A DNA stretch of 64,000 bases from Octopus sinensis (taxonomy: Eukaryota), in NCBI RefSeq assembly GCF_006345805.1, contig NC_042997.1, forward strand, positions 137,454,001 to 137,518,000, written 5' to 3'. Of this stretch, positions 172 through 51,046 are shown piece by piece. A program made the position numbers and the translations under genes. A model generated the notes under the pieces. That model saw only the letters and a program-made list of their open reading frames with translations. It did no database searches and was not told the DNA's origin. How positions within the stretch are numbered: the first letter of the stretch is position 1; each line of letters opens with the position of its first letter.

Positions 172-1171
172 GAAAACCAAGAGCAGTTTCAGACAGGTTG
201 GTATCAAAAGGGTTAACAGCAACAATGTTGGTCTATCTCTTAACAGGTAACCCATGGAAAGATTTCAAACTAATATAAAAAACATATGACAGCTATTATG
301 TTTGCATTAATTACAGAAGTGAGCTACAACTCACCAGGGAATCTACTGGAAAACAAAATAGGTGAATTTAAATAGTAAAGTGACTTTATTGGAGGCATAA
401 GTAATTTTTTTTACCTTAGAGAGAGTTGATTCTCTAATTTCTCAACTTGTTGAGTTTTATCTTCAAGTTGTTGCTGAAGAAATTAAATTAAAAATATATA
501 AACTTCAATAATAATTTTGAAAAAAATGAATTTTAACTAATTATTATTTTGTTATAAATTGGGGTGGATTTGAAACTTTGGACATTTGCATATAGATTGT
601 TGCATGGGATATCATCAATGCTATAATGGACTTAAAAGGAAGATGAAGCAAACCTTTGCTAAAACAGCACATTTTACTAAATTCTTTATTACTTCACATT
701 CTATCTTAAATATGTTTCCAACATGTTACCTGGAGTTAAAGTTTTCAATTTCTGGCATATTTATGAGTTGAAATCTTACCACAATCTTTATAGTGAGCAT
801 ATTCTGCTTCCTTTAGTCTACCTAACTAAGAACAGAGTCCACTCTTACATTGCAAGTGAATGACTAACATTTCAAATGTAAAACCATTTGATCCAATAAT
901 GTGTGTGTGTGTTGTGTGTGTATCTAAGTCATCTTTCCCTTTTTAAGCAAGTGGGTGTAATTTGAAGATCTGTTTTATTTCTAGTAGGTCAAGTAGCCAT
1001 TTAGTAGCCCCCACTCACTTGCTCACATTCATATATGAAAATCTGATGAACACATGATAGGACCAAATGAGAAAAATTGGTGCACGAGATCAAATCATAA
1101 AGAAAGTATATTTAAAACAATTGAAAAGAAAAAAAATAAATCCCAATAAAGGAATAAAATAATTGCTTCAC

Positions 1172-1258
1172 CTTTAATGTAGTAATGTGATCTTCAAGAG
1201 CTGCTTTCTGTCCAAAAACCTCATCTGCTAAAGCTTTGGCTGTTACGATATCACCTGC
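1172..1258 (-). CDS. EEA1: EEA1-like coiled-coil exon (AGDIVTAKALADEVFGQKAALEDHITTLK), phase 0-0; gene continues beyond position 1
   Basis: Acceptor ttattatttctttaacAG, donor GTGAAG at 1171, 87 nt, open frame in phase with the previous exon. Confidence 0.82.
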
Positions 1259-1655: not shown

Positions 1656-2204
1656 ATCAAGATGATCTTAATTATTTTTAATGCAAGCTGTGATTTGAGG
1701 GATTTCACAGTTATTTTTTGTAGGTTAAGCCACCATGTAGAAGGGCTCCTTTGTTGGTTTGAGATGATGAAGATGGCAATGATGATTGTGACAATAACAT
1801 ATGAAAGCTGCAGCTAATGATAAATATTGTTATATGATGGTAACAATAGTGATTGTTTAATACTTCCAGAGATGCTCTGCCTGGAATGACAAAGTCACCA
1901 GTGCCTATCCAGACTAAAATTATAAAATATTAATGATTAAATATAAAATGTAAATAACTTCCAATTCCTTATGGAAATATATCTGTAATTCAGTAAAAGG
2001 CTACTATTTTGATGTTAAGTACAATTTGTGTGTGTGTGTGTGTATGCATATGTGTGTATGCAAATGCAAATGTATAAAAAAATACAAGTTTATTTATCAT
2101 ACAATACTGTATGCTTACATGCACACCCTTATGTGAGCTTACATGCACACATAGAGGCAAATCAGTTGGCTTAGCTTTAATTTATTCCTATAGATGTATA
2201 TATA

Positions 2205-3233
2205 GCAAAAACACTGAAAATGTGCAGAAAACAGTTTCCGTCACATTCCAGGGGAAAAAACTAAAAGTAGTTGATAGTTTCCGTTACCTAGGTGTCCAAG
2301 ACGATAGCAGTGGTTGATGCTCTGAGAGTGTAACTGCTAGAATAATAATAGCCTGGGCAAAGTTCAGAGAGCTGCTACCTCTGCTGGTGACAAAGGGCCT
2401 CCCACTCAGAGTAAATGGTAGACTATGATGCATGTGTGTGAACAGCCATGCTACATGGCAGTGAAACATGGGCTGTGACTGCTGAGGACACGCGTAAGCT
2501 TCCAAGGAATGAAGCTAGTATGCTCTGCTGGATGTGTAATGTCAGTGTGCATACACGACAGAGTGTAAGCACCCTGAGAGAAAAGTGGGATATAAAAAGC
2601 ATTAGATGTGGTGTGCAAGAGAGATGACTGTGCTGGTATGGTCATGTGTTGTGTATGGATGAAGACAGCTGTGTCACACCCTAGCAGTAGAGGGAACCTG
2701 TGGAAGAGGTAGACCCAGGGAGACCTGGGATGAGGTGGTGAAGCATGACCGAATGTTGGGCCTCATGGAGGTGATGGCAAGTGACCGAGACCTTTGGAGA
2801 TATGCTGTGCTTGAGAAGATCCAGCAAGCCAAGTGAGACTGTAACCATGGCCTATGCCAGTGCATCATAACCAGCCCATTAAAGAGTACCCTTTAATCAT
2901 TGGGCAATAAACTGTGCTTGTGAAGACTTGTTGAGGCAAGTGAAGTTGTTGGGGGTGATGCCAGTGCTGCCTGATTGGCACTTGTGCTGGTGGCACGTAA
3001 AAAGCACCATTCGAACATGGTCAATGCCAGTGCTGCTTGACTGGCCCTCATGCCTGTGGCACGTAAAAATTACCCACTACACTCTCGGAGTGGTTGGCGT
3101 TAGGAAGGGCATCCAGCTGTAGAAACTTTGCCAGATCAGATTGGAGTCCTGTGCAGCCTTCTGGCTTGCCAGCCCCTAGTCAAACTGTCCAACCCATGCC
3201 AGCATGGAAAGCAGACCTTAAACGACGAAGATG
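2205..3233 (+). mobile_element. 5'-truncated, disrupted RTE copy (ORF C-terminus plus 3' tail)
   Basis: KTVSVTFQGKKLKVVDSFRYLG and later sequence are homologous to 10650-11277, with stops and indels; the terminal tail ends at ~3233. Confidence 0.9.
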
Positions 3234-3236
3234 ATA

Positions 3237-3469
3237 CAGGGTTGGCCAAAAGTCACCTGACAGTAAATCAAAACCATTTAATTCCAAGATTTATTTATTT
3301 TTAACAACTGAATGAATTTAATAAAAGCATCTAAATATGAAATATCAAGAAAATTGTTCAAACTGAAATCCTTTTTGAGCGATACATTTTTCCATTTGAG
3401 TCAGTACAGAATTACAGCTAATGTTTATGGAATTTTGGTTTACTGTCGGGTGACTTTTGGCCAACCCTG
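3237..3469. mobile_element. Tc1/mariner-type MITE
   Basis: 31-bp TIRs CAGGGTTGGCCAAAAGTCACCTGACAGTAAA / TTTACTGTCGGGTGACTTTTGGCCAACCCTG (1 mismatch); TA on the left flank, TG on the right. Confidence 0.85.
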
Positions 3470-3678
3470 TGTAAGTTAATATTTTTTGCTGTCAATATAT
3501 TTTTGCATATTATTTCATAGTAATGAAACCTTTTATAAACAGTTTATTTTATTAATGCCTATTGCCTACTAAGAGTACTTAGTCGAAGTATGTGTGTGGA
3601 TGATACAACTGAACATCAACATTGGCTGTCACATTTATACTGCGTCTCAGTAGTACCGATAAGTCATTAGTATATATT

Positions 3679-3890
3679 GGTTTCAAATTTTAGCACAAGG
3701 CCAGCAATTTTGGGGGCAGGGTAAGTTGATTACATTGATTCCAGTGCTCCACTGGTATTCACTTTATCAACCCCGAAAGGATGCAAAGCAAAGTTGACCT
3801 GGGTGGAATTTGAACTCAGAATATAAAGACGGATAGAATGTCACTATGCCTTTTGTCTGGTATGCTAATGATTCTGCTAGCTTTCTGCCT
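3679..3890 (-). mobile_element. tRNA-derived SINE, family 1
   Basis: Homologous to the copies at 20238-20446 and 39904-40103 (gagctggcagaatcattagc...gagttcaaattcc...ggccttgtgccaaa). Confidence 0.75.
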
Positions 3891-3937
3891 TAAGCCATTA
3901 TTATATATTAAAATTCAAATTGCAAATAATAACTTAC

Positions 3938-4044
3938 CAGCTTTGCTGCCTTTTGTTCAACACCTGCTTTTATTTGGTTAACTTCTTCAAGTTGTTTTTT
4001 GGTTTCAGTTAACTCTGAGGCCATAGCGCGCAATTCTTTAGCAC
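3938..4044 (-). CDS. EEA1: EEA1-like coiled-coil exon ((S)AKELRAMASELTETKKQLEEVNQIKAGVEQKAAKL), phase 1-0
   Basis: Acceptor tttttctgttctgccaacAG, donor GTAAGT at 3937, 107 nt. EQKAAKL resembles the recalled EEA1 EQKAAQL. Confidence 0.88.
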
Positions 4045-4338
4045 CTGTTGGCAGAACAGAAAAAGTATTAAGAACAATAGAGAAAAACAAACATGAAACT
4101 GTAAGCCCCTGCTGAAATGCTGAACAAATGTTCTTGCAGAAATTGAATAATTTCCCACTAGACATCTGTTAAAAGCTAAACTGGGATTTATGAATAGATA
4201 AATAAATTTTCCTTTTCTTCTTCTTTCCAGGTACGTTCTTCATGAAAACTTAGATACTCACTTAAAAGTTACCACTCACTAAACATTACCACTTTTAAAT
4301 ACAATTGCATGTTAAATTGCCAATTTCTAAATACTTAC

Positions 4339-4402
4339 TGACATTTTGATTTTCTTCAAAAGATTTCATCTGAACTCGGTAAAATTCAAATTCTTCTCGC
4401 TC
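4339..4402 (-). CDS. EEA1: EEA1-like exon (EREEFEFYRVQMKSFEENQNV), phase 0-1
   Basis: Acceptor tttttgctgtccaacAG, donor GTAAGT at 4338, 64 nt. Phases match both neighbouring exons. Confidence 0.8.
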
Positions 4403-4924
4403 CTGTTGGACAGCAAAAACACAGTTAATAGCATTTCAGTTTAACTAAACATTTCTCTTTGTGACATATTCTTTTTACAAGCACACATGTATAAATTTAG
4501 AAAGGTATTGAAATTGAAAGTATGTTATTCATGTAAATTTGAAGATTATTTCTGACATAAGTGAAGTGAAATGGATATAGACGAGGATGGAAATGAAGTT
4601 GTGCAATTAATCCTCATGCACTCACAATACTTTAGAATGATACAACAACTTAGATTGCCATTTATAACAAAACTAAACAGACATGGAACAAGTAAACAAA
4701 CTAAAATAGAAGTCAAACCTTGAAAATGAACCCCTTATATTTGCTCTGTTGTCTAATATGTTACCAGTTCAAAAAAATTTCATGAAACTTATGACCATCT
4801 CTGCAATACAAGTACATTCTTACAGAGATACACATGTACAACTATATTTCCTTCTCCTTATGTAGAGGTATTGTTACAAATCAACAAGGCTGTTCACCAT
4901 GACTGTGTCCTTTTATTTATACAA

Positions 4925-5357
4925 TGTATCTTATCATGAGGTTTTGCTATCATGAGGCATTGAGAAGGACCGAGAGAGTAATGGTGAGAGAAATATGTGG
5001 AGTGAAACTGTTTGATAAGAGAAAGACTGAAGACTTGATGGGGATGTTGGGATTGGAGGAATCGGCTGGCAAGGGCGAATGGAGTGTGGTGGTATGGGCA
5101 TGTGTTGAGGATGGATGAGGAGCATGTTCTGAGGAGGGTGCTTGAGTTTGAGGTAAATGGACCAAGAGAGCAAGGCTGACCAAGGAAAACATGGAGAAGA
5201 CAGGTGGAAGAGGAGATTGGGAGGGTTGGCTTGAGAAGGGAGGTTGCCCGAAAGATGGCGAGATGGTGTGAGGGCGGTTGCTATGGCATTGAGGTAGATC
5301 TGGCCACCTCTGTTAACGGGGACAAAACCCGGATTTAAAATACTGGATGATGATGAT
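4925..5357 (+). mobile_element. Decayed 3' fragment of a second RTE subfamily
   Basis: LRRTERVMVREICGVKLFD, WYGHVLR-like and GQPRKTW remnants; ends in gatgatgat. Confidence 0.75.
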
Positions 5358-5810
5358 CTTAAAGCTAGCCTTTATCCAGGCCAAACTCTTCAATCCCTTC
5401 TCCTCCTCCTCTCTCTCTCCAGGGATATAGCTCAATCCTTGGAAACCTGCTGCAGAACATCCCATTCTTAAGAAGGACAGCCCTTCTGATCCTATCTACT
5501 TCTTCCAACATCTCAAAAGTGATGGGGTCAGCACAAATAACAATAACAATACCTGGAATCTCTTTCCCTTCTTAATAGACATTATCAGTACAGAATTTGT
5601 AAAACCAAATCTATTGGATATCTACTCATCTGAGTTACTCACCAGTGATCACTTACACAAGAGAAATTTGGTGAAAACAACACAAGTACATACACAACAG
5701 AACATACACATGCAACATAACATACACAACCCAAGCACACATACACTAAAACTTAGAAATATGTTTAGAAGTGAACATTGCTCTGTTACAAACAATGCAA
5801 TAGCATTTAC

Positions 5811-5931
5811 CTTCTTTGTGAAAGGTATTGCACCATCAGTTCCCTCCTGGTATTTCTCAAGTTCTTTCTTTAGCTCAGTAACATACCATTGCTCATCTTT
5901 TAGCTGTTTCTTTAGTTCTTCCATCTGTGAT
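5811..5931 (-). CDS. EEA1: EEA1-like exon, start of coiled coil ((K)SQMEELKKQLKDEQWYVTELKKELEKYQEGTDGAIPFTKK), phase 2-0
   Basis: Acceptor ctctccctcAG, donor GTAAAT at 5810. LKDEQWYVTELKKELEKYQ resembles the recalled EEA1 LKEEKWYSEELKKELEKYQ. Confidence 0.9.
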
Positions 5932-6702
5932 CTGAGGGAGAGATTAATATCTTATTTTTAAACAAAATGTCTTTCTTCTCGTGAAAAGGAGAGTATAGTC
6001 TATAGAATAGGCTCTAATATAATACTAGCATTTCTTTCTTCATTTCTGTTCAGAAAGTAGAAATAAAATTGACTTCATCTTTTATTGCAGCCACATAAAT
6101 TGTTTTTGGACAAGATACATAATTCTTTAAACATCTAGTGCATCTAGCAGACAGTTAATACAAGGAATAACATTTTTTCTTCATAATATTTGGCAAGATA
6201 AGAAGTTTGAATCAGAAATTAAGGAACAAAGAAGAAGAAGAAGCATGAAATATACATATTTAACCTTCCTTTTGTTGCCTACTTATTATGAAGTTCTTAA
6301 AAATTTCTAGTCAGTGGAAATCATGTATAACGTATTTCATTCTTTTTAAAACTCATCAGCATGACATAACCCAGGGTAAATTAATTAAGCATCTTATGAA
6401 AATTGAGACATTTCTTAAAAAGAAAATAATTGCAGCCTAGAAGAAATTATTTGTCTCAGCTTACTGCAATGAGAAATAGATAACAAATCTTTACAGAAGT
6501 TAACAAGCAGTAAAACTAGAAAACTATCCCTCAACAAATGATGGGTCAACTCAAACAAAGAACTTGAACTTAAACATACTAAGATATCATAAAACACAAC
6601 CCAGTTCTATCTGCACCAATAAAAGTACTGAAAAAAATATTTCTCTCAAAAAAGTTAAGGTATTGCTCATATCCTGGAAAAGCATTCTTTTACTAAAAAG
6701 TG

Positions 6703-7968: not shown

Positions 7969-8169
7969 TGACCCGCCCACCCACCCCCTCCACACATGCA
8001 GGAAGTTCCTATTCTTTTCATCCCTGGGTTGCTTCCCTTGAAGACTGCAAATGCTCTTTCACCATCCCTACTTCTAGTTTCGACCTAGGTAAGGTAATGA
8101 TCATACAGTGCAAAATATGAATGGGTAGTGTTATGCAGGTTGAATTGAAGGCTACTGTATTACTTGCTC

Positions 8170-11100
8170 ATGAATTCTGCCAAATGCGAGCTTTCTTTTC
8201 AGGTACATGAAGCTACTGTCCACCGACGCAGGGTCTCTAGGGCCCATACCTCCCACACCCTCAACGTTGGCACACTGAAAGGTAGGTCTGGCGAGATAGT
8301 TGAGATGCTTGAACGGAGACGTGTGGATATGTGTTGTATGCAAGAAGTAAGGTGGAGAGGAGGTTCTGCTAGGTTCCTCACAGGCAAGGAACACAGGTAC
8401 AAGATTTTCTGGGCAGGGAACACTGACAGGGTTGGAGGCGTGGGCATACTTATCGCTGAGAAATGGGTAGATAAAGTAATTGAGGTAATCAGAGTATGCG
8501 ACAGAATACTTAAGATTAGATTAGCGCTTCATCATAGTTTAGCAACCATTATATCAGCCTATGCTCCTCAGTCGGGGCTACCTGATGGACAGAAAGACCG
8601 ATTCTATGACACTCTACTGCAGACTACCTCGTTGACGAACGACAGAGACCTTCTCTTTGTGGCTGGTGACTTCAATGGTCACGTTGGACGACATGCTGGG
8701 GGCTTCCACGGCGTACATGGAGGCTATGGCTCTGGTTCCCGCAACGAGGAGGGAACCAGGCTGCTGGAGTTCTGCGATGCAAATAATCTTATGATTTGCA
8801 ACACTAACTTCAGGAAACCTACCAGCCACCTAGTCACCTACCGATCGGGCCAACATACCAGCCAAATTGACTACATCCTTGCCAGGCAAAGGGAGAGATG
8901 GCTACTTATAAATGCCAAAACCTTCCCAGGCGAAGAATGCACCCCACAACATAGACTGGTAGTTAGTGACTTTAGGATCAGGAGTAGGAGGACAACCAGA
9001 AGACGACCAACATGGAGAAGAAGGATCTGGAAGCTTAAGGATCCTGTGAATGGACAGAGATTTAGAGACATGTTACTTGAAGCCTTTGACGAAGTAGAAG
9101 GGGATAGTGTATCACATGGGGTAGAGGACAACTGGACGTTTCTAAGGGACAACCTGCTGAGAGCCACTGACCAGATCTGTGGCTGGTGCAAAGTCCCCTC
9201 TCGTCCCAAGGTAACGTGGTGGTGGAACAGTGTCGTAGACAGGGCTATTAGAGAAAAGAGACAGACTTGGAAGCACTGGAAGAATGGTGGTAGCAGGGAA
9301 TTGTATCAGACTGCTAAAAGGGAAGCTAGGAGACAGGTCTATCTAGCCAGAGGGGAAGCAGATAAGAAAAAATTTGCCAATGTTCTGCGCCGTGAGGACC
9401 AAAGACTGGAGGTGTTTCGCGTTGCAAGACAGTGTGTGAGAGAGAATTGTGATGTGGTGGGAGAGAAGTGTGTTCGCATGGAAGATGGTTCACTTGCGCT
9501 AAACGAGGATGCAAAGAGAGAGGCTTGGAGACGCCACTATGAAAGGTTGCTGAATAAAGAAAATGAATGGGATAAAGAGAGTCTGCCGAACGTTGACCCA
9601 ACAGAGGGACCAGCTATCAGGGTTGATAGTTCCTTAGTAGCTAAGGCAATTAGAAGCATGAAGACAGGGAAAGCCCCAGGCCCATCAGGTATCACTGCAG
9701 AGATGCTCAAAATATCTGGTAGTGTCGGCTATAGCCTAGTCACCTGTATAGTTAATCAGGTGATACATGAAGGAGTCATACCCAATGACTGGTGTAGCAG
9801 CATAATAGTCAACTGCTACAAAGGTAAAGGTGATGCCCTAGATACAAATAATTACAGAGGTATCAAGCTGTTGGATCAGGTGATGAAGGTTACAGAGAGG
9901 GTCATAAGCCAACTAATTAGAGAGAGAGTTAGTTTAGATGAGATGCAGTTTGGTTTCGTGCCAGGGAAAAGTACCACTGATGCTATATTCCTGGTAAGGC
10001 AGCTGCAGGAGAAATACCTAGCCAAAGATAAGGCCCTGTACCTGGCTTTTGTTGACATGGAGAAAGCCTTCGACAGGGTCCCCCGATCCCTCATATGGTG
10101 GTCAATGAGGAAACTAGGAATAGAAGAATGGTTAGTGAGAGCTGTGCAAGCCATGTACAGGGACGCTGCTAGTAAGGTGAGGGTTGGAAATGAGTACAGT
10201 GAAGAATTCCGGGTAGAGGTAGGGGTCCACCAAGGCTCAGTCCTCAGCCCCCTCCTATTTATCATAGTCCTCCAGGCAATAACGGAGGAATTCAAGACAG
10301 GATGCCCCTGGGAGCTCCTCTATGCTGATGACCTTGCTCTAATTGCTGAGTCATTATCAGAACTGGAGAAGAAGTTTCAGGTGTGGAAGCATGGTTTAGA
10401 ATCGAAGGGCCTTAGAGTCAACCTAGCTAAAACCAAAGTCCTAATAAGTAGGAAGGTAGACAAATCACAAACGCCTTCAGGTAGATGGCCCTGCTCGATC
10501 TGTAGAAAAGGTGTAGGTAGAAACTCTATAAGATGCACCAAGTGTAAGCTATGGACACATAAGAGGTGCAGCAATGTCATAGGAAGGCTAACTAGGAAGA
10601 TGGTTTTTGTATGTGGCAGATGCTCGGGAGCATTAACCTCTGAAAATCTGCAGAAAACAACTTCCGTCACTTTCCAGGGGGAAAAACTAGAAGTAGTTGA
10701 TAGCTTCCGTTATCTTGGTGACCAAGTCAGTAGTGGGGGTGGGTGTGCTGAAAGTGTAACGGCTAGAGTAAGAATAGCCTGGGCAAAGTTTAGGGAGCTC
10801 TTACCTCTGTTGGTGACTAAAGGCCTCTCGCTCAGAGTAAAAGGCAGACTGTATGATGCATGTGTACGAACAGCCATGCTACATGGCAGTGAAACATGGG
10901 CCGTGACTGCTGAGGACATGCGTAAGCTCGCGAGAAATGAAGCTAGTATGCTCCGTTGGATGTGTAATGTCAGTGTTCATAGTCGACAGAGTGTAAGTAC
11001 CTTGAGAGAAAAGTTGGACCTAAGAGGAATCAGATGTTGTGTGCAAGAGAGACGATTGCGCTGGTATGGTCATGTGGTGAGAATGGATGAAGATAGGTGT

Positions 11101-11277
11101 GTGAAAAAGTGCCACACCCTGGCAGTTGAGGGGACCTGTGGAAGAGGTAGACCCAGGAAAACCTGGGTCGAGGTGGTGAAGCACGACCTTCGAACTCTAG
11201 GTCTCACCAAGGAAATGACCAGAGATCGAGACCTATGGAAGTATGCTGTGCGTGAGAAGACCCGGCAAGACCAGTGA
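8170..11277 (+). CDS. RTE-clade LINE polyprotein (AP endonuclease, reverse transcriptase, C4HC3 PHD-like finger); uninterrupted 1035 aa from the ATG at 8170
   Basis: APE motifs TLNVGTL, QEVRW, AGDFNGHVG, SQIDYIL. RT motifs NYRGIKLL, FVDMEKAFDRV, GVHQGSVLSPLLF, YADD (10321-10332). RTE-type C-terminus LHGSETWAV...ERRLRWYGHV...RGRPRKTW. No stop or frameshift. Confidence 0.95.
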   Translation: MNSAKCELSFQVHEATVHRRRVSRAHTSHTLNVGTLKGRSGEIVEMLERRRVDMCCMQEVRWRGGSARFLTGKEHRYKIFWAGNTDRVGGVGILIAEKWVDKVIEVIRVCDRILKIRLALHHSLATIISAYAPQSGLPDGQKDRFYDTLLQTTSLTNDRDLLFVAGDFNGHVGRHAGGFHGVHGGYGSGSRNEEGTRLLEFCDANNLMICNTNFRKPTSHLVTYRSGQHTSQIDYILARQRERWLLINAKTFPGEECTPQHRLVVSDFRIRSRRTTRRRPTWRRRIWKLKDPVNGQRFRDMLLEAFDEVEGDSVSHGVEDNWTFLRDNLLRATDQICGWCKVPSRPKVTWWWNSVVDRAIREKRQTWKHWKNGGSRELYQTAKREARRQVYLARGEADKKKFANVLRREDQRLEVFRVARQCVRENCDVVGEKCVRMEDGSLALNEDAKREAWRRHYERLLNKENEWDKESLPNVDPTEGPAIRVDSSLVAKAIRSMKTGKAPGPSGITAEMLKISGSVGYSLVTCIVNQVIHEGVIPNDWCSSIIVNCYKGKGDALDTNNYRGIKLLDQVMKVTERVISQLIRERVSLDEMQFGFVPGKSTTDAIFLVRQLQEKYLAKDKALYLAFVDMEKAFDRVPRSLIWWSMRKLGIEEWLVRAVQAMYRDAASKVRVGNEYSEEFRVEVGVHQGSVLSPLLFIIVLQAITEEFKTGCPWELLYADDLALIAESLSELEKKFQVWKHGLESKGLRVNLAKTKVLISRKVDKSQTPSGRWPCSICRKGVGRNSIRCTKCKLWTHKRCSNVIGRLTRKMVFVCGRCSGALTSENLQKTTSVTFQGEKLEVVDSFRYLGDQVSSGGGCAESVTARVRIAWAKFRELLPLLVTKGLSLRVKGRLYDACVRTAMLHGSETWAVTAEDMRKLARNEASMLRWMCNVSVHSRQSVSTLREKLDLRGIRCCVQERRLRWYGHVVRMDEDRCVKKCHTLAVEGTCGRGRPRKTWVEVVKHDLRTLGLTKEMTRDRDLWKYAVREKTRQDQ

Positions 11278-11324: not shown

Positions 11325-11809
11325 CCATCCGTTCGTGTCCGCTGTCAGCCTCGTCTGGCACCCGTGCCGGTGATACGTAAAAGCATCATTCGCTCATGGC
11401 CGTTTGCCAGCTCTGCCTGGTCCCGTGTCGGTGGCACGTAAAAGCACCATCCGTTCGTGTTCGTTGCCAGCCTCGCCTGGCCCCGTGCCGGTGACACGTA
11501 AAAGCACCGTCCGTTCGTGGCCGTTTGCCAGCTCTGTCTGGCCCCGTGTCGGTGGCACATAAAAGCACCATCCGTCCGTGTCCGTTGCCAGCCTCGGCTG
11601 GCCCCCGTGCCGGTGACACGTAAAAGCACCGTCCGCTCGTGGCCGTTTGCCAGCTCTGTCTGGCCCCGTGTCGGTGGCACGTAAAAGCACCATCCGTTCG
11701 TGTCCGTTGCCAGCATCGCCTGGCCCCGTGCCGGTGACACGTAAAAGCACCATCCGTTCGTGGCCGTTCGCCAGTTCTGTCTGGCACCTGTGCAGGTGGC
11801 ACGTAAAAA
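11325..11809 (+). repeat. Eight ~60-bp units alternating A/B (4 x ~120-bp dimer) in the RTE 3' UTR
   Basis: A = ccatccgttcgtgtccgttgccagcctcgcctggccccgtgccggtgacacgtaaaag; B = ccgtccgttcgtggccgtttgccagctctgtctggccccgtgtcggtggcacgtaaaag. Confidence 0.92.
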
Positions 11810-13525
11810 ACACCCACTACACTCGCGGAGTGGTTGGCGTTAGGAAGGGCATCCAGCCGTAGAAACACTGCCAGATCTGACTGGGCCTGACGAAGCCTTC
11901 CAGCTTCACAGACCCCAGTTGACCCGTCCAACCCATGCTAGCATGGAAAGCGGACGCTAAACGATGATGATGATGATTAAGTGGGGGCAAAACATATATG
12001 GTTAATACAGAACTTAAAGAATAACCAAAATATATAAAAGCGGTGCTGTCATAAGGCCTGGTACACTGAGCAGTTGGTTGGTGGCTCATGAAACTATGAA
12101 TCCAGTGCTAACCTATGTATGCTGTAGCTCGTTGTCAGTAAATAACTTTGATAGGCCCTAGAGTATTGCTTTGGTTAGGGCTCTATAATGCTGTATATAT
12201 GGCTCTGTACTCAAGAGGATAATCCATAGAAGGAAGGACATGTAATTGTCTTGTGCTTAAGCTGAGAAGCAGTAAGTGAAAGCAAGTGAAGAGATAGGTG
12301 AAACAGGCAGAATCAAAGGGATGTGAGAAGTAGATTGCAAATAATAGTACAAAACAAAAGGAGATGACATAAAGCAATGAAGGGCAAGAGATTCAAGATT
12401 TTCATTAAGAGTGAGTTTAACATAGCATGAAGCAGTTTAATGAAGGGGAGTTGAAAGAAATCTTTTCAAAATATTCAATATCACTTATTTTTCCATGGTT
12501 GGATGGGTTCCAAAGCATCTCATCTCCTGTCATCTGGCAATACATATCAACTTCACAGTCACAGTCTTTACAACTGGACACTCATCTTTTGTCTAACCAC
12601 CTTATCGGAAGGATACTGGGAGCATTTTATGGTTCCACCAGCACTAATGAGATTGTTTATGGTAGGACTAAAGTGTCCCTGCCAGCCTACATTAGTTCTT
12701 ATTTGGTGTTACTACCTTCCTAACGGGTTGCCTACACCTATGATGTTCAAGTCAATTTTGTTTATCACTTCCTTATTGTCACACATGTGCATATATGTGC
12801 TCACTGAGCATTCTGTTACAACACTTATGGCAAGAAACATATAGCAAGTTATAGTAAGTTCACCAAACATGTTTACACATGCTATCTTTTCGAAGCAAAA
12901 CTTTCTTAACATCAATATAATAAATTTTCTCTACACCAATATTCACATCACTTAGTGAGGACTCCCACAAATACTAACAGTATGTACAAGATATATTCAC
13001 AAACTTTATTTTCTACACTATTATCTCAGTACTATAATTGACCACCTGTTTAATATTGGAATTAGGTTTTTTTTTATATCTGCTTTCCAGACCAGAAACC
13101 TGATACAGGTTATATTTCAATCCTAAAGAAGACAAGTATCTTAGATTCTCAGAAATACAGAAACTGGACTAGATATATAGAAATTAGATGAAGCCAGTTC
13201 TATAAGATTATACAGGATAACTGTTAAATGAAGAACCAATTCAAAACCTCTGCTCTTTTGAATTTATTACTTTCACCTAAATACATCATCCTTACTGTAT
13301 CTCACCTACATCCAGACTCAATACTAAACAATTTTTCTAATATTGTTTACCTATCTCACTAGAACCATCAATGTGGTCTCTCTAATTATGAACTTTCACC
13401 CCTACTGCAAATCAAATCAAATGATAATCTCATTCAGACATTTTTATTATTACAGGATCCCCAGTGCTCAACTAATCCTTAATTTATTGACCTTGAAAGG
13501 ATGAAAGGCAAAATCAACCTCAGTG

Positions 13526-13572
<47 letters not shown>

Positions 13573-13822
13573 GATTTGGATATATCGAAGAATCCTAACA
13601 AACTTACCAACATAAAGAGATATAGTCTCAAAACATAAAAAATACCAGAAATTGATGATTAAAAAAACATTCAGACAAATACAAAACCAAAACACCGAGA
13701 TTTACGAATGTATATAATACAGAAAATAGCACCACTAAACACTGTGCACATCCTACATAAAGCACTTTCAATACAGTTTTAAAGATAAGAACACCACAAT
13801 AAACCAAAAATATACAACTTAC

Positions 13823-13929
13823 TTTTCTTCCACAGTTGGAATTTTACCATCGTGTACAGACATGTAATGTTTTTCCAAGGCATCTTGAGAGGGTAATGGT
13901 TTTTTGCAAAGTGGACATAGGAAACCTTC
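13823..13929 (-). CDS. EEA1: EEA1-like exon, C2H2 zinc finger 2 (EGFLCPLCKKPLPSQDALEKHYMSVHDGKIPTVEE), phase 0-2
   Basis: Acceptor aaatctttttAG, donor GTAAGT at 13822-13817, 107 nt. C-x2-C-x12-H-x4-H. It supplies exactly the 0-to-2 phase change needed to join the next exon. The ORF track shows only a different frame here. Confidence 0.9.
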
Positions 13930-14525
13930 CTAAAAAGATTTAAAAAATAAAAAAAGGATTTTATCCATAAGCATAAACATTTAGATACAGTAGTTAATAA
14001 CAAAGAGAAATTGTTCTAATTGTGTATAAAAGATGAGCAATGGTTTATTGACTAAGAACTTACTGTTATAATAGAGATATCAAATGATTTCTCTTGTATA
14101 CACTTACTGAAGAATAATTAATTGTTAAAGCAAATAAGCTTCGCTTTGCTAAAAAGTACAATTTTAATTATTTTTATCAATTAAACATTTTCTCAGTTCA
14201 GTACAATAAGTATGTTAACCTTCACAAAAGTATAAGTTTGTCATGCAGAATGTATCTCTGGGAAATTTCCTATTGTCAATATTTTAAGTTACCAAGTTAG
14301 TGAATGTTTTTTTTTTCAGTCAAATTTTTATATGACTCAAGCACCAAAAATCTGGTATGCATGAGTAATACTAGGCTTTATTGAGCATTTTCCCTTTCTT
14401 TATTGAAAATTGTCACAAGCAAGGCCACAGACCGCTTCTAGATGTGACATTAATACCATAAAAGCCCTATATATCTATGCATATATATGAGAAAGCAATA
14501 AAATAATTGATAAAATATGTAAATA

Positions 14526-14745
14526 ATCATCATCATCATCGTTTAACGTCCGTTTTCCGCGCTAGCACACGTTGGACAGTTCGACCGGGTCTGGGAAGCC
14601 AGGGGCTGCACCAGGCTCCAGTCTGATCTGGCAGTGTTTCTACAGCTGGATGCCCTTCCTAACGCCAACCACTCCGCGAGTGTAGTGAATGCTTTTTACG
14701 TGCCACCTGCACAGGTGCCAGGGGGGTCTGGCATCGGCCACGATC
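14526..14745 (-). mobile_element. RTE 3' terminal fragment
   Basis: Reverse complement of the 11783-11977 tail (catcatcatcgtttaacgtccg...cttcctaacgccaaccactccgcgag). Confidence 0.88.
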
Positions 14746-15414
14746 GAAAATACGAAATAATAAATACAGTAAAGGTGTTAATAAAAATAAATAAAATGAG
14801 ATGATAAATAGAAGATCTGATAAAAATATCAAAATGAACAAAACTGCCAGCATTAATATGAATGTCTGGAGTAGGCATAGTACTTAACATAAGATCAACT
14901 TCACTTCCTGTCACTACTCAAGTTATTTCTTGACATTTTGACAAGAATTAATACTTGAAGCTAATGTCTGTTTATTACAGCTGTAATTTTCATTAATTAA
15001 ACACTTTTTAGGCTCATACATTAAGTATATTAGTCCCCAATTAATAAAGGATGTTTATTTATTGTATTAGTGTTTGAATTGTCGCTATTTTAGTAATAAT
15101 AAATTTCTCTTTCTCAGTAGCAATTTTCTGCCTCTCACCTTCTGTCTTTACCTGCCTATTTGTCTTGGAATTTTGTCTCACATTAGCTATAAATCTAACT
15201 GCTTTGCATCCTCTAATTCTTTCTTCAGTTACCTGATTCTGACCCCTCCAATGCATTAGCCACTTCTAACATTTATTAGTTCTTTTCTTCCTTCTTGTTC
15301 CTGTTCTCCCATGCACACTCAGCATCGTATTTGATATCTAAGAACTTTACACAAAAATACTATAATAAAACTAATGACAGCTAAAGAGGATTAAGAACTT
15401 CCCGGAATACTTAC

Positions 15415-15519
15415 ACCACCATCAGCATAATCTCTTTTGACAACATTGTGTTCTTGGAAATGGTTCTGAAGGATTTCTGCTGAATTAAATGTTTTCATAC
15501 ACTGAGGACAAATGAAACC
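15415..15519 (-). CDS. EEA1: EEA1-like exon, C2H2 zinc finger 1 (GFICPQCMKTFNSAEILQNHFQEHNVVKRDYADGG), phase 0-0
   Basis: Acceptor tattttttcAG, donor GTAAGT at 15414-15409, 105 nt. C-x2-C-x12-H-x3-H; GFICPQCMK matches the recalled vertebrate EEA1 finger start. Confidence 0.9.
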
Positions 15520-17363
15520 CTGAAAAAATACATCATAAATATATAAATAAAAAAACAAACTTTTAATGAGCTCAATTATCATCATTGACTTAACACTAAT
15601 CTGTGTCCCAGTTGACCAGAAATAATGTTGATGAAAAAGAGATTTTATTATGTTCTAGCTACTTATCTGGCTCCAGGTACAATAGCTGCAAGAAGATTAC
15701 ATAACCTCAGTCATTTCTATTATTATAACAAATGGTTACCACATTTGATAAAAACATTTTTTTTCTATTGAACAATCTATATTATATTTTCATTCAAACC
15801 TATATTGCTATATCATATGTTAACCCATTAGTATTCATATTACTCTGTCAAATATAATGTTCGATTATATAAATTGTTTTGAATTTATCAAGCACTATCT
15901 TGTAGTTTAGAGGCATTGTGATTGTTTAATTTTAGAATGACATTGCAGGGTTGAGGTGAAAAGCCAGATCTGACCAGTTTCAACATAAAACAGGTTAAAT
16001 ATTTTGGCCAGATATGGTCAGTTTGAATGCTAAAGGATTAATCATGCATTACCTTGTAGCTTTGAGATTAACAACAAAGTGACTGTTTATTTGTAGAATG
16101 ATATTATAGGGTAGGTATGAGACTGAATCAAGTTGATTTGAACATAACAGAAGTAGAATATTTGGGCCGGATACGGCCAGTTTAAATGCTATTTCTATTT
16201 ACTGTTGCAGAAGAAGAGATAAGAATTTGGTCTGACAGTGTTGCTGCTGTTTAGCCCCAAGCCAACCCTGGTGCTAAACAAGCAAATCCATAGGCTAGAG
16301 CATTTCCTTAAATTGTTGCATTGTAAAAAATGAGTATAAAACTGCTTCTGTATTCTAGCATCCCCCTAAAGATTCTTTGCAACTCTTTCTGGATATTTTC
16401 TCAGTAATGGGTACTAGCTTATCCAAAAACGTTACTTGTGGGGAAATTACCAGACTATCTGGTGTAATGTTAGATGCAATACCAAGTAGTTAGTAAGTAG
16501 AATGTTCTCACACATAAGGTTCTTACAATATTACTATCCTCTTTTGCTCGTTAATTTTAGAAATTTCACTTAATGTATACATACATCTCAATATAGATAA
16601 AGATTACATCAATCCTGTTACTTGACTGGTATTTTATTTATCAACCCCAAAAGGATGAAAGGCAAAATTAACCTCAGCAGAATTTGAACTCAGATGATAA
16701 AGAGCTAAAACTAATGATGCAAAGTATTTTTTTCTGATGTGCAAGGAATTCTGCCTGCTGATCTGATTTTTCTATATTGGTTTAGATTTATGGGTTTACA
16801 TCTCAGCTGTGTATCATCTCATTTAAAGTTCAATATTCTGATCTAACAACTTTTTCCATAATCTTTCTAGGTTTACCTCAACTGCAGATATTCTCTAACA
16901 TCAACACAACACTTTTTCACCCAGAATGTTAATATTTGTAAACATGGGAATCCTTAAAATAATATTTTGTGAAAATATTCCTTCTATTTTTCAATATGCA
17001 CCAGTAATAGAAGTGTGAGGCAAAAGGACTGTAAGGACCTAAAGAGCAAAAGTTCAACTGCCACCACAATGTAATTGCAGAAAGCTATAAGAATCTGTAA
17101 AACAGTGTTCAAATGATTCACAGAATCAGCTAACCCAACCTAATGTGAACAAATGGATTTAGTAACTGTCAGAGTTTAGTTATATGTATATAAACCAAAT
17201 GGCAGTATTTCCTTGAATTTTTACTTTCATAACCATTTAAATAGTGTCCTTCAATGACTCAAAGTCACTGAAAAAATACAGCAAACATCACTGTATGAGG
17301 GTGAGCCAGAAAGTAAACGCAAATAAAAACTGCATTATCTTCTGACTTTGTAACCAAGCTTTT

Positions 17364-29197: not shown

Positions 29198-29677
29198 TGC
29201 AGTGGAATTCTGCTTTAAGCATGCCATATAACTCCTCGTTACATTAAAAAAAAATTTTTTAGAAAATGTTTGCAAATTTGTTTTCTACATATGAGATTTC
29301 ACACAGCTATCAAAGAAAAAAAACTTTTAAAATTTTTTACAAAATTAAAAAAAAAATTACATTATTTAAATTTGATGGATATTTGTCCTTATCTTGTTTG
29401 TTGTGAACACAATGTTATACCCTCCAGCCTTCATCAGGTGTATCGGGGAAATTTTGAACCTGGGTTCTCATAACTAAGGTATTTTTCGATGTTGTTGTTG
29501 TTGCTCTTCTTTTTCTTCTTATAATTATTCAGGTCACTGCCTGGAATCAAACTTGGAATCTTAGGGTTAGTAGCCCGTGCTCTTAACCACTATGCCATAT
29601 ACCCATGGGCATATGGAACAGTGGTTAAGAGCACGGGCTAATAACCCAAAGATTCTGAATTCAATTCCAGGCAGTAA

Positions 29678-29713
<36 letters not shown>

Positions 29714-30242
29714 CAACAACAACAACAACAACAATAATAATAACAATAATAACAACAACAACAATAATAATAACAACAACATATTGTAAAATACCTTAGG
29801 AATGAGAGAGAACCCAGGTTTGAAATTTCTCCAAAACACCTGATGAAGGCTGGAGGGTTGTGTTAACAACAAACAAGATGAGGGCAAAATATCCGTCAAA
29901 TGTAGAAGGAAAATTTTTTTAGTTTTTAGAATTTTATTTTTTAAATCACAGTTTAAAATATGCACAGTCCAAATTTTGGGCTTTAATCCCAGCAATAGAC
30001 CATTAAATGTGTTTATGGGGAGAAAGATATTGAAAAACATAAATACATCAGACTGGCAAATAAACAAGGAGAGTATGAGGTGGTCATGAGATGTGCTAAA
30101 AATCCCAGCTAATCATGCACCAAAAAAATTTTTGGGGGTTTATGCATAATCATATGAATTCCCATATGTATAACACAAATTGCAAAACTTTTATGAAGTT
30201 AAGTAGGGTTATATGGTGTGCTTAGAGCAAAATCCGCCTGCA
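29198..30242. repeat. ~1-kb imperfect palindrome: head-to-head tRNA-like heads, (AAT/AAC)n and hammerhead-remnant tails
   Basis: Symmetry centre cccAT|ggg at 29605/29606. Arms pair through the tRNA-like head, gagaacccaggtt, cctgatgaaggctggaggg and outer gcag..cttaagca..ccatataac blocks. Confidence 0.85.
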
Positions 30243-30618: not shown

Positions 30619-30690
30619 CTCAGTTTCACTGCTAACATCTGAAACTGCTTCAAGAGCTTCATGTTCAGGTGAAGAGACTGGGCTTAAACT
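30619..30690 (-). CDS. EEA1: EEA1-like exon (first coding exon found), SLSPVSSPEHEALEAVSDVSSETE, phase 0-0
   Basis: Acceptor tttttgcttttttttccAG (30692-30691) and donor GTatca (30618). The 72 nt join in frame to the GFICPQCMK exon, matching the recalled vertebrate EEA1 junction NESSSE|GFICPQCMK. Confidence 0.75.
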
Positions 30691-43796: not shown

Positions 43797-44132
43797 ATGT
43801 TCAACACCTTAAAAGAACACAAATTGCTGCAGCTAGCTTATATGATAGAAAATGATAAGTTACAAATCAACAGTGTTCGAGATGGTCAATTGTTAACAAA
43901 CATATTGGAGAATTTTCTTTTGTTGACATTGAATAAAGCACATTACGCCGAAAGAGAAAGTTTTTTTCTAGAAAATATATTCAGATATAATAATAAAGGA
44001 AATCAGGATGTGTCTTTAAAATTACCTTGTCAGAGTCCTTTTTTGTTAGGAATCGACGAAGCATTTTCCAGTAATTTTGATTATCGTGAATATTTAAAAA
44101 TTATTTTTAAAGATTTAATTCCTTGGAAGTAA
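43797..44132 (+). CDS. Unidentified ORF (MFNTLKEHKLL...FKDLIPWK, 111 aa; frame open from 43572); possible first exon of a divergent gene
   Basis: 186 consecutive sense codons in non-repetitive AT-rich DNA; possible phase-2 donor AA|GTAAAT at 44129/44130; no recognisable motif. Confidence 0.4.
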   Translation: MFNTLKEHKLLQLAYMIENDKLQINSVRDGQLLTNILENFLLLTLNKAHYAERESFFLENIFRYNNKGNQDVSLKLPCQSPFLLGIDEAFSSNFDYREYLKIIFKDLIPWK

Positions 44133-44840: not shown

Positions 44841-46718
44841 ATATTGTTATATTTCGGAATGGTCATATTGCCAGTTTAGCCAATAAAAACACACGCACTA
44901 TATATTTGGTGTTATTTTGCTTCAGTGATATTTATTTTTTACATTAATCTTAATCTTATTTCGGCCAAAGTTCTTTCGTCACACTCCTGTGACCGCATCA
45001 GTGGTCCTTTGTTTTCTTCTCACTTACTTGTGTCTCTCCTTACTAACCGTCAGCCATTTTGTATTTCTATTGTATGTCTTCATTTGCGCATGCTTATATC
45101 TCTATGTGCGTCTATCAGTACTAGACACTGAACTCTGGCTAGAAATTGTGAAAAATAAAACCCAAATCCTTCATTCATACTATGCAAAACCTATGGCCTC
45201 AAAATACCTGATCCACCGGAACTCAGCCATTGCGGGCAATGCCAAATTCAATATTTTGATGGCAGACCTCGTCAGAATAATGAGAAATGTGTCACGCATG
45301 TGCGAGCCTACAGAATTAAAGAGACACATACAGTATTTCATTCACCGCATGCAGTTCTCAGGTTACAGCCATAAAGAAAAGATCAGAGTATACAAAGGAG
45401 CCATGAAGAAATTTGATAATATATTATGTAATGATAGGAATGGGATTTGCCCACTCTATAGGAACAAGTCATGGAACACTATAGAAAGGACAAAAAAGAA
45501 AATAGGGAAGGCCAACTCTTGGTATGATAGCCATAAATACCAGAGTGTCATGTTCGTTGACACCACCCCTGGAGGTGAACTAGCGTACCGCTTTAGAAGG
45601 ACCCTAGATAAACTTAAACTAAGAATTAAGGTTGTTGAAAAGCCAGGCAACCCTATCAGATCTATAATTGGTAGAAGCTATCCTTTTAGTAGAACTCTCT
45701 GTACGGATAACTATTGCACTGTATGTAGATTTAGCCCACAAACGAACTGTAAAGCCAGAAATGTGGTCTATAGTATAAGATGTATAGAGGGACGATGCAG
45801 TAACAAGACAGTAACATACGTAGGGGAAACTGCAAGAAGCATTGGTGAGCGGGTGAATGAACATTGGAAACAACTCAAGGAAGGTAAAAGCTCATCGATT
45901 CTGTACCAACACGCCGAACAAGAACACGGGGGATCAATCAATAACATAGAGATTAATATATTGTCCACACATAGAACAGATGCAACAATTAGACAAATTA
46001 CAGAAGCTACACATATAATAGAAAATAAACCTAGCCTGAATAGAAAACTAGAATGGAGCAATAGCGCACTCCACAACATATGACAATAGTGGATCCTGCA
46101 AACATAATAAATACACAGGTAATTAAAGAAATAGAAATGAATATCTATATGTGTATGTATGTGTGTATATATGTATGTATATGTATATGTATATGTATGT
46201 ATATATATATATGTATATGTATATTTTTTTTTTTTTTTTTCGATTAGATTTATTATTATTATTACTAATATTGTTGTTATACATACATACAAGCATATGT
46301 AATGATAATAATGGGTGGACGTAAACACATGAACAAAATTAGAACAAAAGCAACAACAACAAAAACAAAATACAAATTACAAGAATGTACATAACCAGAA
46401 GATACAAATATTACAGGCATCCCCCCCCACACACTAAATAAACATAGACGCACATAGAGATATAAGCATGCGCAAATGAAGACATACAATAGAAATACAA
46501 AATGGCTGACGGTTAGTAAGGAGAGACACAAGTAAGTGAGAAGAAAACAAAGGACCACTGATGCGGTCACAGGAGTGTGACGAAAGAACTTTGGCCGAAA
46601 TAAGATTAAGATTAATGTAAAAAATAAATATCACTGAAGCAAAATAACACCAAATATATAGTGCGTGTGTTTTTATTGGCTAAACTGGTAATATGACCAT
46701 TCCGAAATATAACAATAT
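44841..46718 (+). mobile_element. 5'-truncated Penelope-like element (Neptune-type) with ~275-bp inverted terminal arms
   Basis: Arms 44841-45115 and 46444-46718 are near-identical reverse complements. The body is open from ~45116 to the stop at 46083: thumb YAKPMASKYLIHRNSA, Cys linker CTDNYCTVC..NC, GIY-YIG NVVYSIRC..YVGETARSIGERVNEH. Confidence 0.92.
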
Positions 46719-49896: not shown

Positions 49897-51046
49897 ATGA
49901 CAGATCTATCAGACTTTGAAAGAGGTCAAATTGTTGGTGCTCATATGGCAGACGCTAGCATAATGAAAACAGCTGAAATGTTTAGGGTATCAAGAAAGAC
50001 TGCCTTGAAAGTAATGACAGCCCTTGAGAAAGAGGGAAAGGTCTCCTCGTCGAAACCAAAACTTTCAGATAGGGACAGTGGGACTCTTACACGAATTGTA
50101 GAAAAGATCACAAAATTACAGCTCCCAAAATTACTGCAGAGCTTAAAAAACTGTTTGCCAGGGGCTGCACAAAGCTGGATTTCACAGGAGGGCTGCAATC
50201 AGAAAACCACTACTTTCAAAAACAAATATTGCAAAGCGTTTAGAGTGGAGTAAAAATCTACAGAATTGGTCCCTAGAGCAGTGGAAGAATGTTATTTTCT
50301 CAGACGAGTCATCCTTTACCTTGTTTCCGACTACTGGCCAAGTATACATGTGGAGACAGCCAAAAGAAGCATTTGACCCAGACTACCTTCTTCCAACTGT
50401 TAAACATGGAGGAAGATCTATGATCATCTGGTGGGGCTATATCTTGGAAATCCGCCAGCCCAATGGTTTCCCTTCATGCAGAATTAACAGTCAAGACTAT
50501 TTAAGCATTTTATCTGATCAAATTCATCCTATGGTTGCAGAACTGTTTCTGGAGGGAAACGCAATCTTTCAGGATGATAATGCACCAATTCCCACAGCTA
50601 AAGTTGTTACTGAATGGCATAAGGAACATTCTAGGGAAGTTGAACATCTTATCTGGCCACCACAGTCTCCAGATCTTAATATTATTGAACATTTATGGTG
50701 CATTTTAGAAAAACAAGTAAGGAGTCAATATCCTCCACTATGGTCACTACAAGAACTGAGGACTGTTTTAGCTGATGAATGGATAAAAATTCCTTTGAAA
50801 AAATTCAAACTTTGTATGAGTCCATACCTCGTAGAATTCAAGCCGTAATTACTGCCAAAGGCGGTCCTGTTCCATCATCATCATCATCGTCGTTTAACGT
50901 TCGTTCTCCATGCTAGCATGGATTGGACGGTTCGACCCTGGTTCTGGGAAGCCAGAAGGCTGCACCAGGCTCCAGTCTAATCTGGCAATGTTTCTACAGC
51001 TGGATGCCCTTCCTAACGCCAACCCTTCCTAACGCCAACATATTAA
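49897..51046 (+). pseudogene. Tc1-family transposase pseudogene (frameshifted; RTE tail inserted just before the stop codon)
   Basis: Fragments in different frames (49897-, ~50260-, 50815-). The terminal GGPVPY* is split by the insertion; TAA lies at 51044-51046. Confidence 0.88.
50876..51038 (-). mobile_element. RTE 3' tail nested in the Tc1 element
   Basis: catcatcatcgtcgtttaacgttcg...cttcctaacgccaac (last 15 bp duplicated), flanked by CAT at 50873-50875 and 51039-51041. Confidence 0.88.

Follow-up and report, generated by a model that had tools for sequence, protein, structure and literature searches.

The question raised by this locus, a 64,000-nucleotide (nt) stretch of contig NC_042997.1 of Octopus sinensis (hereafter the window, to whose positions all coordinates refer), is how a gene resembling that of early endosome antigen 1 (EEA1) came to begin with two C2H2 zinc fingers on two separate exons, when the canonical human protein has a single one. 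An earlier reading of the sequence alone (the sequence-only reading) had attributed the pair to an exon duplication by which a bivalent or dual-specificity tether tip arose, with the implication of a novelty of molluscs. According to our analysis it is probable that exons 3 and 4 of the octopod gene, which encode the first finger (ZF1) and the second finger (ZF2), represent instead the ancestral bilaterian architecture of EEA1, whose first-finger exon is left out of the canonical single-finger form of mammals.

The gene is situated on the minus strand, and nine exons between 44064 and 415, all with AG/GT boundaries, splice into a single open frame of 253 residues. Concerning the finger exons, ZF1 begins at ...tattttttcag/GGT TTC ATT TGT and ends at GAT GGT GGT/gtaagt (slashes mark exon borders), i.e., with a pyrimidine-rich acceptor and a consensus donor; ZF2 begins at ...atctttttag/GAA GGT TTC CTA TGT and ends at GAA GAA AA/gtaagt, after two bases of a Lys codon. 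The preceding exon 2 terminates with ...SSETE/gtatca at 30619. Both finger exons encode the EEA1 subtype of finger, GF[IL]CPxC-x12-H-x3-5-H, and the linker from the last histidine of ZF1 to the first cysteine of ZF2 reads NVVKRDYADGGEGF. Removal of ZF1 keeps the frame (...SSETE-EGFLCPLC...), and removal of ZF2 leads to a stop after 13 codons. On all of these points the sequence-only reading proved accurate: the coordinates, sequences, and canonical splice sites of the two exons, the upstream end at 30619, the histidine spacings (which translation confirmed), the skippable nature of the phase 0-0 exon, and the need for ZF2 to maintain the frame. When nine relatives were used as tblastn queries, finger-like coding sequence was detected in the window only at the positions of ZF1 and ZF2.

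The relatives were found by an exhaustive search of 1.84 billion protein representatives, which yielded 924 hits, mostly multi-finger proteins. The best relative (E 6.7e-25) aligns across both fingers and the coiled coil behind them, and the relatives that align in a single stretch over both of these parts are, wherever they bear a name, called early endosome antigen 1 or early endosome antigen 1-like. A homologue search by index returned nothing with a 192-residue draft of the N-terminal model and P0002 alone with a 15-sequence alignment; because it missed proteins of its own query alignment, we take this as a limit of the index and not as an absence of relatives. The approximately 150 residues that follow the fingers within the window are heptad-like and align to the coiled coil of the relatives. 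Exon 5 encodes LKDEQWYVTELKKELEKYQ, the motif with which the coiled coil of EEA1 opens, including the start E(E/K)WYSEELKKELEKYQ, and is 56.7% identical over 30 residues to the bird EEA1 P0070 (tblastn). With human EEA1 the gene has in common this conserved coiled-coil start after the finger, the finger motif (E)GF(I/L)CPxC...HY..VHD, and an N-terminal M(L/F)RR... leader; it differs from it in the extra upstream finger, which lies on a symmetric exon. In Pfam, zf-C2H2_4 matches the N-terminal model in two stretches (E 5.5e-10). In a search of all PDB sequences, the second-ranked match is the human EEA1 finger 3MJH_B (E 8.2e-6), which aligns to ZF2; no other match near the top bears the name of an endosomal or Rab-effector protein, and the list otherwise consists almost entirely of generic C2H2 proteins, plus one protein of an RNA-editing complex. 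From an 18-sequence alignment, AlphaFold2 predicts a beta-beta-alpha fold for each of the two fingers, with a flexible linker between them and a long helix behind, at a mean predicted local distance difference test score (pLDDT) of 83.4; averaged over blocks of 10 residues, the pLDDT reaches 91-92 in ZF2, 59 in the linker between the fingers, and 94-98 in the helix of exon 5.

Two other kinds of protein share features with this N-terminus, namely a Rabenosyn-5-like, finger-bearing endosomal protein (Rabenosyn-5 is described as a Rab5 effector; PMC2185588) and an ordinary DNA-binding protein with tandem C2H2 fingers, and to the proposition that the gene is one of these and not EEA1 we attach next to no credence. 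The search of the structural model against the PDB returned only generic, DNA-binding tandem fingers, but all of them with E-values above 0.001; there are only two fingers, and their linker is long and lacks the TGEKP of the short Krueppel-type linkers, so that a Krueppel-type identity was discarded. Rabenosyn-5 (ZFYVE20) has an N-terminal finger of this subtype too, EGFLCPLC...HY...H, which is likewise similar to ZF2, with a score of 82 compared to 93 for EEA1. The FYVE domain of Rabenosyn-5, however, lies close behind the finger (within about 150-250 residues) and the protein has no long coiled coil, whereas in the octopod gene the fingers are followed by a coiled coil, for 150 residues, that bears the EEA1 motif, and the FYVE domain of its relatives is found at the far C-terminus. 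The Pfam scan detected no FYVE domain in the 192-residue draft that it covered, and the lack of such a domain in the first 253 residues (as far as that draft was scanned) argues against Rabenosyn-5, which was rejected as the identity of the gene. A C-terminal FYVE domain is present in six of six full-length relatives that share the two-finger N-terminus (Hirondellea, Armadillidium, Artemia, Parasteatoda, and two apparent transcript contigs; E 6e-18 to 1.7e-20), and these relatives, where named, are EEA1. We therefore accept the gene, judged by its N-terminal part and its relatives, as an EEA1 orthologue whose own FYVE end would lie beyond the window; the assignment made by the sequence-only reading holds in every test that the window permits.

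The distribution of the two fingers was assessed by a pattern scan of the recovered N-termini of 23 sequences besides the octopod one. Two or three fingers were counted in 22 of these, the exception being a partial bird protein that starts at the finger. Two fingers are found in Mollusca (the snail Candidula), Annelida (Ridgeia), Crustacea (seven crustaceans, among them Hirondellea, Chionoecetes, Artemia, Pollicipes, Amphibalanus, and Armadillidium), Chelicerata (the spider Parasteatoda), Nematoda (Plectus), and Echinodermata (the crinoid Antedon), as well as in one bird model (Malurus) and in several unnamed contigs, while three unnamed sequences exhibit three. Every named invertebrate EEA1 that was recovered, from six phyla or subphyla, has two N-terminal fingers; examples of named relatives are Artemia franciscana (XP_065566487.1), Hirondellea gigas (A0A6A7G0K5), Armadillidium nasatum (KAB7500992.1), and Parasteatoda tepidariorum (XP_071043229.1), and Candidula unifasciata and Ridgeia piscesae are represented by unnamed N-terminal models. 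Three Logan contigs from other invertebrates, sized like spliced transcripts, encode both fingers in a single frame, i.e., P0002 (328 aa in 1392 nt), P0048 (945 aa in 3498 nt), and P0141 (979 aa in 3270 nt). The sequence-only reading had itself stated that the novelty would be removed if two fingers were the general state among invertebrates, and this is the state that the count across animals gave. The octopod gene is thus an ordinary representative of the two-finger EEA1 genes of invertebrates, of which many already carry this name in annotations.

Within this group, the order of the fingers and the coiled coil behind them are the same, and the conserved columns of the alignment span both fingers (G, F, C, P, C, and H in ZF1; C, P, C, L, H, and H in ZF2). 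The octopod differs from all others in the H-x3-H spacing of ZF1, which elsewhere is H-x4-H, and from the arthropods in keeping GF in both fingers, whereas the arthropod ZF2 hairpin lacks it. In comparisons with the other protostomes, each octopod finger consistently scores higher against its counterpart by position, ZF1 against ZF1 and ZF2 against ZF2, than crosswise (score difference +6 to +36), from which it follows that the duplication is older than the split between lophotrochozoans and ecdysozoans. The two fingers of the crinoid resemble each other to an unusual degree (14 of 21 residues), and gene conversion or a separate duplication may have occurred there.

The same layout is recovered at the level of exons, which were mapped in the genomic loci of four other species (Candidula, Ridgeia, Antedon, and Malurus). 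In all five species, including the octopod, the first finger occupies its own phase 0-0 exon, which starts exactly at GF and is 105 nt long in the octopod, 111 nt in Candidula, 120 nt in Ridgeia, 105 nt in Antedon, and 123 nt in Malurus, and the second finger opens a new exon at (E)GF; in snail and annelid the intron positions match those of the octopod. At the Antedon mediterranea locus (L005), a two-finger gene of 156 residues (2001-4599) is directly followed by a model with a product of 1312 residues (4612-6599), and these two adjacent models are probably one EEA1 gene split by annotation. On the strength of the mapped exons, the layout is common to lophotrochozoans and deuterostomes. A duplication specific to molluscs or cephalopods, resulting in a new bivalent tip as the sequence-only reading had implied, must be considered very improbable under these circumstances. 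The octopod fingers are alike (9 of 21 core residues identical in the proteins) and lie on neighbouring exons, as such a duplication would predict, but no nucleotide similarity is left between the two exons (global alignment score -7), the pairing of the octopod fingers by position extends to arthropods and nematode, and the same two-exon layout exists in snail, annelid, crustaceans, spider, nematode, crinoid, and bird, with genomic exons and canonical splice sites that argue against annotation artefacts in the other phyla.

Concerning the vertebrates, the single finger of the canonical protein corresponds, as far as its position indicates, to ZF2, since 3MJH_B aligns to ZF2 and since the extra finger exon of the bird is situated upstream of the canonical one; the sequence-only reading had made the same equation. 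In Malurus melanocephalus, the EEA1 model XP_057242676.1 splices this extra exon in frame (L003, 20409-20531), between exon 2 (...NNEGSSE) and the canonical finger exon (GFICPLCMKSHGSAEELFKHYEAVH). The reverse arrangement, that vertebrates kept ZF1 and lost ZF2, was suggested by a MAFFT alignment, in which the finger of the partial bird protein was placed under ZF1 (and its GGEGHLSP under the start of ZF2); this placement was overruled by the upstream extra exon in the bird locus and by mammal-like contigs.

A separate, vertebrate-directed search with the Malurus model as query returned one-finger short models from turtle, opossum, anole, pig, beaver, and eel, and the extra finger in a model of the parrot Amazona (70 aa), in genomic reading frames, and in two nearly identical mammal-like Logan transcript contigs (L007 and L008). 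L007 consists of a GC-rich 5' untranslated region, the ATG, and exons 1-2, identical to those of pig EEA1 over the available residues and joined directly to GFICPLCMKRCITPIDLSEHYQKVH..., a phase 0-0 stretch of 42 codons (346-471); it then reads on unspliced past a gtgggt donor into a 96-residue product with a hydrophobic tail. A genomic contig of another species (L009) contains the same exon (1495-1620) behind a cag acceptor and without the upstream part of L007, so that the upstream junction of L007 is a genuine splice. Amniotes therefore retain a homologous symmetric finger exon of 123 or 126 nt, which some transcripts use. In the Malurus model and the mammal-like contigs it lies, as in the octopod, between exon 2 and the canonical exon, with an intron directly before GF; the amniote exon is missing from the canonical protein, whereas its counterpart is found in every invertebrate model recovered.

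Since the amniote exon is only sometimes used, the exon can be optional, and the question arises whether ZF1 is optional in the octopod as well, i.e., whether the main mRNA joins 30619 to 13929 and encodes a one-finger EEA1, with the two-finger isoform being minor or tissue-specific. The length and phase of ZF1 (105 nt, phase 0-0), which allow it to be skipped in frame, would suit such a facultative cassette, as would the homologous amniote exon, which is left out of the canonical protein and present in the bird model and the mammal-like contigs. We nevertheless regard this as unlikely, because ZF1 is flanked by a long polypyrimidine tract and a consensus gtaagt donor, because each of the named invertebrate proteins and apparent transcript contigs recovered has both fingers, with ZF1 skipped in none (there is no octopod RNA among them), and because ZF1 is under purifying selection between octopods. 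The latter is indicated by a genomic contig of a related octopod (L001, 1771 nt), which aligns to positions 16184..14113 of the window with about 86% identity: the ZF1 exon is 96.2% identical, with 4 differences in 105 positions (among them one synonymous, V to I, and R to K), no indels, and intact splice sites, whereas the flanking introns are 82.5% and 87.4% identical and differ at 14.8% of positions. So few differences in the exon have a binomial P of 2.7e-4.

The H-x3-H form of ZF1 (HFQEH) is shared by the related octopod, and every other tabulated EEA1 finger of any phylum has H-x4-H. It is a lineage-specific deletion of one codon in an otherwise well conserved finger.

A further observation from the comparison with L001 concerns the intron between ZF1 and ZF2, in which a SINE-like (short interspersed nuclear element) insert ending in (GAT)n is absent from L001, such that it was inserted after the two octopod species split. 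Its core GGCATCCAGCTGTAGAAAC occurs in 9 copies in the window, where 0 are expected, and the repeat resembles the common Octopus SINE.

What two fingers might do at the tip of EEA1 can be considered from the human protein, which is a parallel coiled-coil dimer with a FYVE end that binds membranes containing phosphatidylinositol 3-phosphate (PI(3)P) and an N-terminal finger by which Rab5-GTP on incoming vesicles is captured (PMC5902227). Rab5 binding is impaired when the human finger carries the double mutation F41A/I42A (PMC10397212). The hydrophobic Phe-Ile position of the hairpin, just ahead of the first cysteine, is kept in both octopod fingers, as GFIC in ZF1 and GFLC in ZF2. By analogy, octopod EEA1 would form a parallel coiled-coil dimer, be anchored on PI(3)P membranes by its C-terminal FYVE domain, and capture Rab5-GTP vesicles with its distal tip, which would carry two fingers per chain and four per dimer. 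Two putative Rab-binding modules per chain could provide higher avidity or specificity for a second Rab.

It is quite conceivable, though on balance we doubt it, that only ZF2 binds Rab5 and that ZF1 binds another Rab of the Rab5 group or another protein, or acts as a spacer tuning the tip. ZF2 corresponds by position to the characterised human finger; the conserved patterns of the two protostome fingers differ outside the hairpin (C-[MFY]..F in ZF1, CK..L in ZF2); and ZF1 taken by itself barely reaches Pfam zf-C2H2_jaz (22.7 bits, with a cut-off of 22.6). However, it is ZF1 that holds an invariant GF(I/L/V)CP hairpin across all phyla and that keeps the exact F-I pair of the human finger whose mutation impairs Rab5 binding, whereas in arthropods ZF2, and not ZF1, departs from this motif and has drifted to NY/SY/TY-LCP. 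As a tentative proposal, for which we would claim only a limited chance of being right, the ancestral tip might have possessed two Rab-binding fingers, with the first of them on a symmetric exon retained from molluscs to amniotes and regulated inclusion of this exon altering the number or kind of Rabs bound, and the one-finger mammalian EEA1 might be a splice form of this older design.

Several points weigh against an ancestral two-finger EEA1 with two functional fingers. The window contains neither the FYVE domain nor most of the coiled coil, so that full membership of the octopod gene in EEA1 rests on its relatives, and neither an annotated cephalopod EEA1 protein nor a cephalopod transcript was among the matches in the libraries searched. 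Between protostomes and deuterostomes, the finger sequences do not decide one-to-one orthology, the scores for crinoid and bird being near zero or negative, and the deuterostome side of the ancestral state relies on exon architecture and parsimony. ZF1 is one residue shorter between its histidines, though H-x3-H is still a standard zinc-binding spacing, and its inclusion in this species could take place only sometimes. Furthermore, Rab binding by any first finger is putative.

In full-text searches of the literature library available, no paper describing a two-finger N-terminus of EEA1 was found, and the pattern across phyla, though visible in databases, may be undescribed in print. The one mildly new result is that the single mammalian finger would be the derived form, and this constitutes a modest lead. 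For the octopod genome itself the result is of little importance, as it concerns the correct annotation of the start of a housekeeping endosomal tether. Models of EEA1, in which Rab5 is captured at the tip and the coiled coil then collapses, are built on the one-finger human protein; a second finger, whose hairpin is the same Rab-binding one, is present in most of the animal lineages sampled and possibly also in an amniote isoform. If this second finger does bind a Rab, the valency of the tip would be doubled or a second specificity added, which would bear on vesicle capture. The octopod, snail, and annelid genes offer the two fingers on cleanly separate exons.

The exons of the octopod gene and the other elements of the window are listed in Table 1.

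Table 1. Exons of the octopod EEA1 gene within the window, and further elements of the same stretch (residues in parentheses are encoded by split codons; slashes mark exon borders).
Feature	Position	Strand	Length and phase	Encoded or contained sequence	Remarks
Exon 1, coding part	44026..44064	-		MLRRFLTKKDSDK	ATG at 44064; donor AAG/gtaatt; ends in phase 0
Exon 2	30619..30690	-	72 nt, phase 0-0	SLSPVSSPEHEALEAVSDVSSETE	ttttccag/AGT ... GAG/gtatca
Exon 3 (ZF1)	15415..15519	-	105 nt, phase 0-0	GFICPQCMKTFNSAEILQNHFQEHNVVKRDYADGG	C2H2, H-x3-H; HFQEH at 15445-15459
Exon 4 (ZF2)	13823..13929	-	107 nt, phase 0-2	EGFLCPLCKKPLPSQDALEKHYMSVHDGKIPTVEE(K)	C2H2, H-x4-H
Exon 5	5811..5931	-	121 nt, phase 2-0	(K)SQMEELKKQLKDEQWYVTELKKELEKYQEGTDGAIPFTKK	EEA1 motif E(E/Q)WY..ELKKELEKYQ
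Exon 6	4339..4402	-	64 nt, phase 0-1	EREEFEFYRVQMKSFEENQNV(S)	restores the frame between exons 5 and 7
Exon 7	3938..4044	-	107 nt, phase 1-0	AKELRAMASELTETKKQLEEVNQIKAGVEQKAAKL	from direct reading, tblastn, and frame check
Exon 8	1172..1258	-	87 nt, phase 0-0	AGDIVTAKALADEVFGQKAALEDHITTLK	
Exon 9	415..473	-	59 nt, phase 0-2	QQLEDKTQQVEKLENQLSL(R)	last exon inside the window
SINE-like insert	14524-14748		~225 nt	core GGCATCCAGCTGTAGAAAC	intron between ZF1 and ZF2
LINE-type frame	8164-11277	+	1037 residues		intron between ZF2 and exon 5
Trinucleotide run	~29660-29800	-			intron ~0.9 kb below exon 2
Frame with GIY-YIG match	44989-46083	+	364 residues		
Mobile-element remains with DDE_3 fragment	49897-50848	+			DDE_3 fragment at 50321-50848
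Mobile-element remains with RVT_1 fragment	62312-63763	-			RVT_1 fragment at 63140-63763
Tandem array	11325-11808		unit ~121-124 nt, 4 copies	GGTGACACGTAAAAGCACC	
Tandem array	54819-55194		unit ~121-124 nt, 3 copies	GGTGACACGTAAAAGCACC	

The gene model was derived from stop-free stretches, from direct reading, and from tblastn with the proteins of the relatives. The sequence MFRKLLKKDADK of P0002 maps to exon 1, which ends at the same residue as exon 1 of the snail; EFEAMSLQVKALEEGKTL of P0068 aligns to exon 6, and the identity of exon 8 to the proteins of snail and annelid and to P0002 is 58-65%. A direct junction of exons 5 and 7 through a weak internal donor (GATG/gtgcaa) was dropped in favour of the 64-nt exon 6, with which the strong donor at 5811 can be used and the frame is regained. 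Beyond exon 9 the gene leaves the window at its low end, at position 415.

Among the introns, the one of 7.9 kb between the ZF2 exon and exon 5 contains, antisense to the gene, an uninterrupted frame with an endonuclease/exonuclease/phosphatase domain and RVT_1 (E 1.8e-31), which looks like an intact open reading frame 2 (ORF2) of a retrotransposon of the long interspersed nuclear element (LINE) type and accounts for the G+C-rich block at 8-12 kb. The trinucleotide run below exon 2 encodes around 40 leucines in one frame, and its other frames read poly-Cys/Tyr or Ile/Val. An Rfam scan of the region 13000..16500, which includes both finger exons, gave no match.

Outside the gene, a frame on the opposite strand that begins about 900 nt upstream of the EEA1 start codon exhibits a weak match to the GIY-YIG nuclease domain (E 7e-4, below the Pfam cut-off) and may be the remnant of a Penelope-like element. 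Remains of mobile elements are furthermore found as a fragment of a DDE_3 transposase (E 2.2e-10), with an unassigned reading frame just upstream, and as a reverse transcriptase fragment (RVT_1, E 1.1e-24), with an unassigned reading frame beside it. The two tandem arrays have matches of 89-91% among their copies, and their unit adjoins copies of the SINE core.

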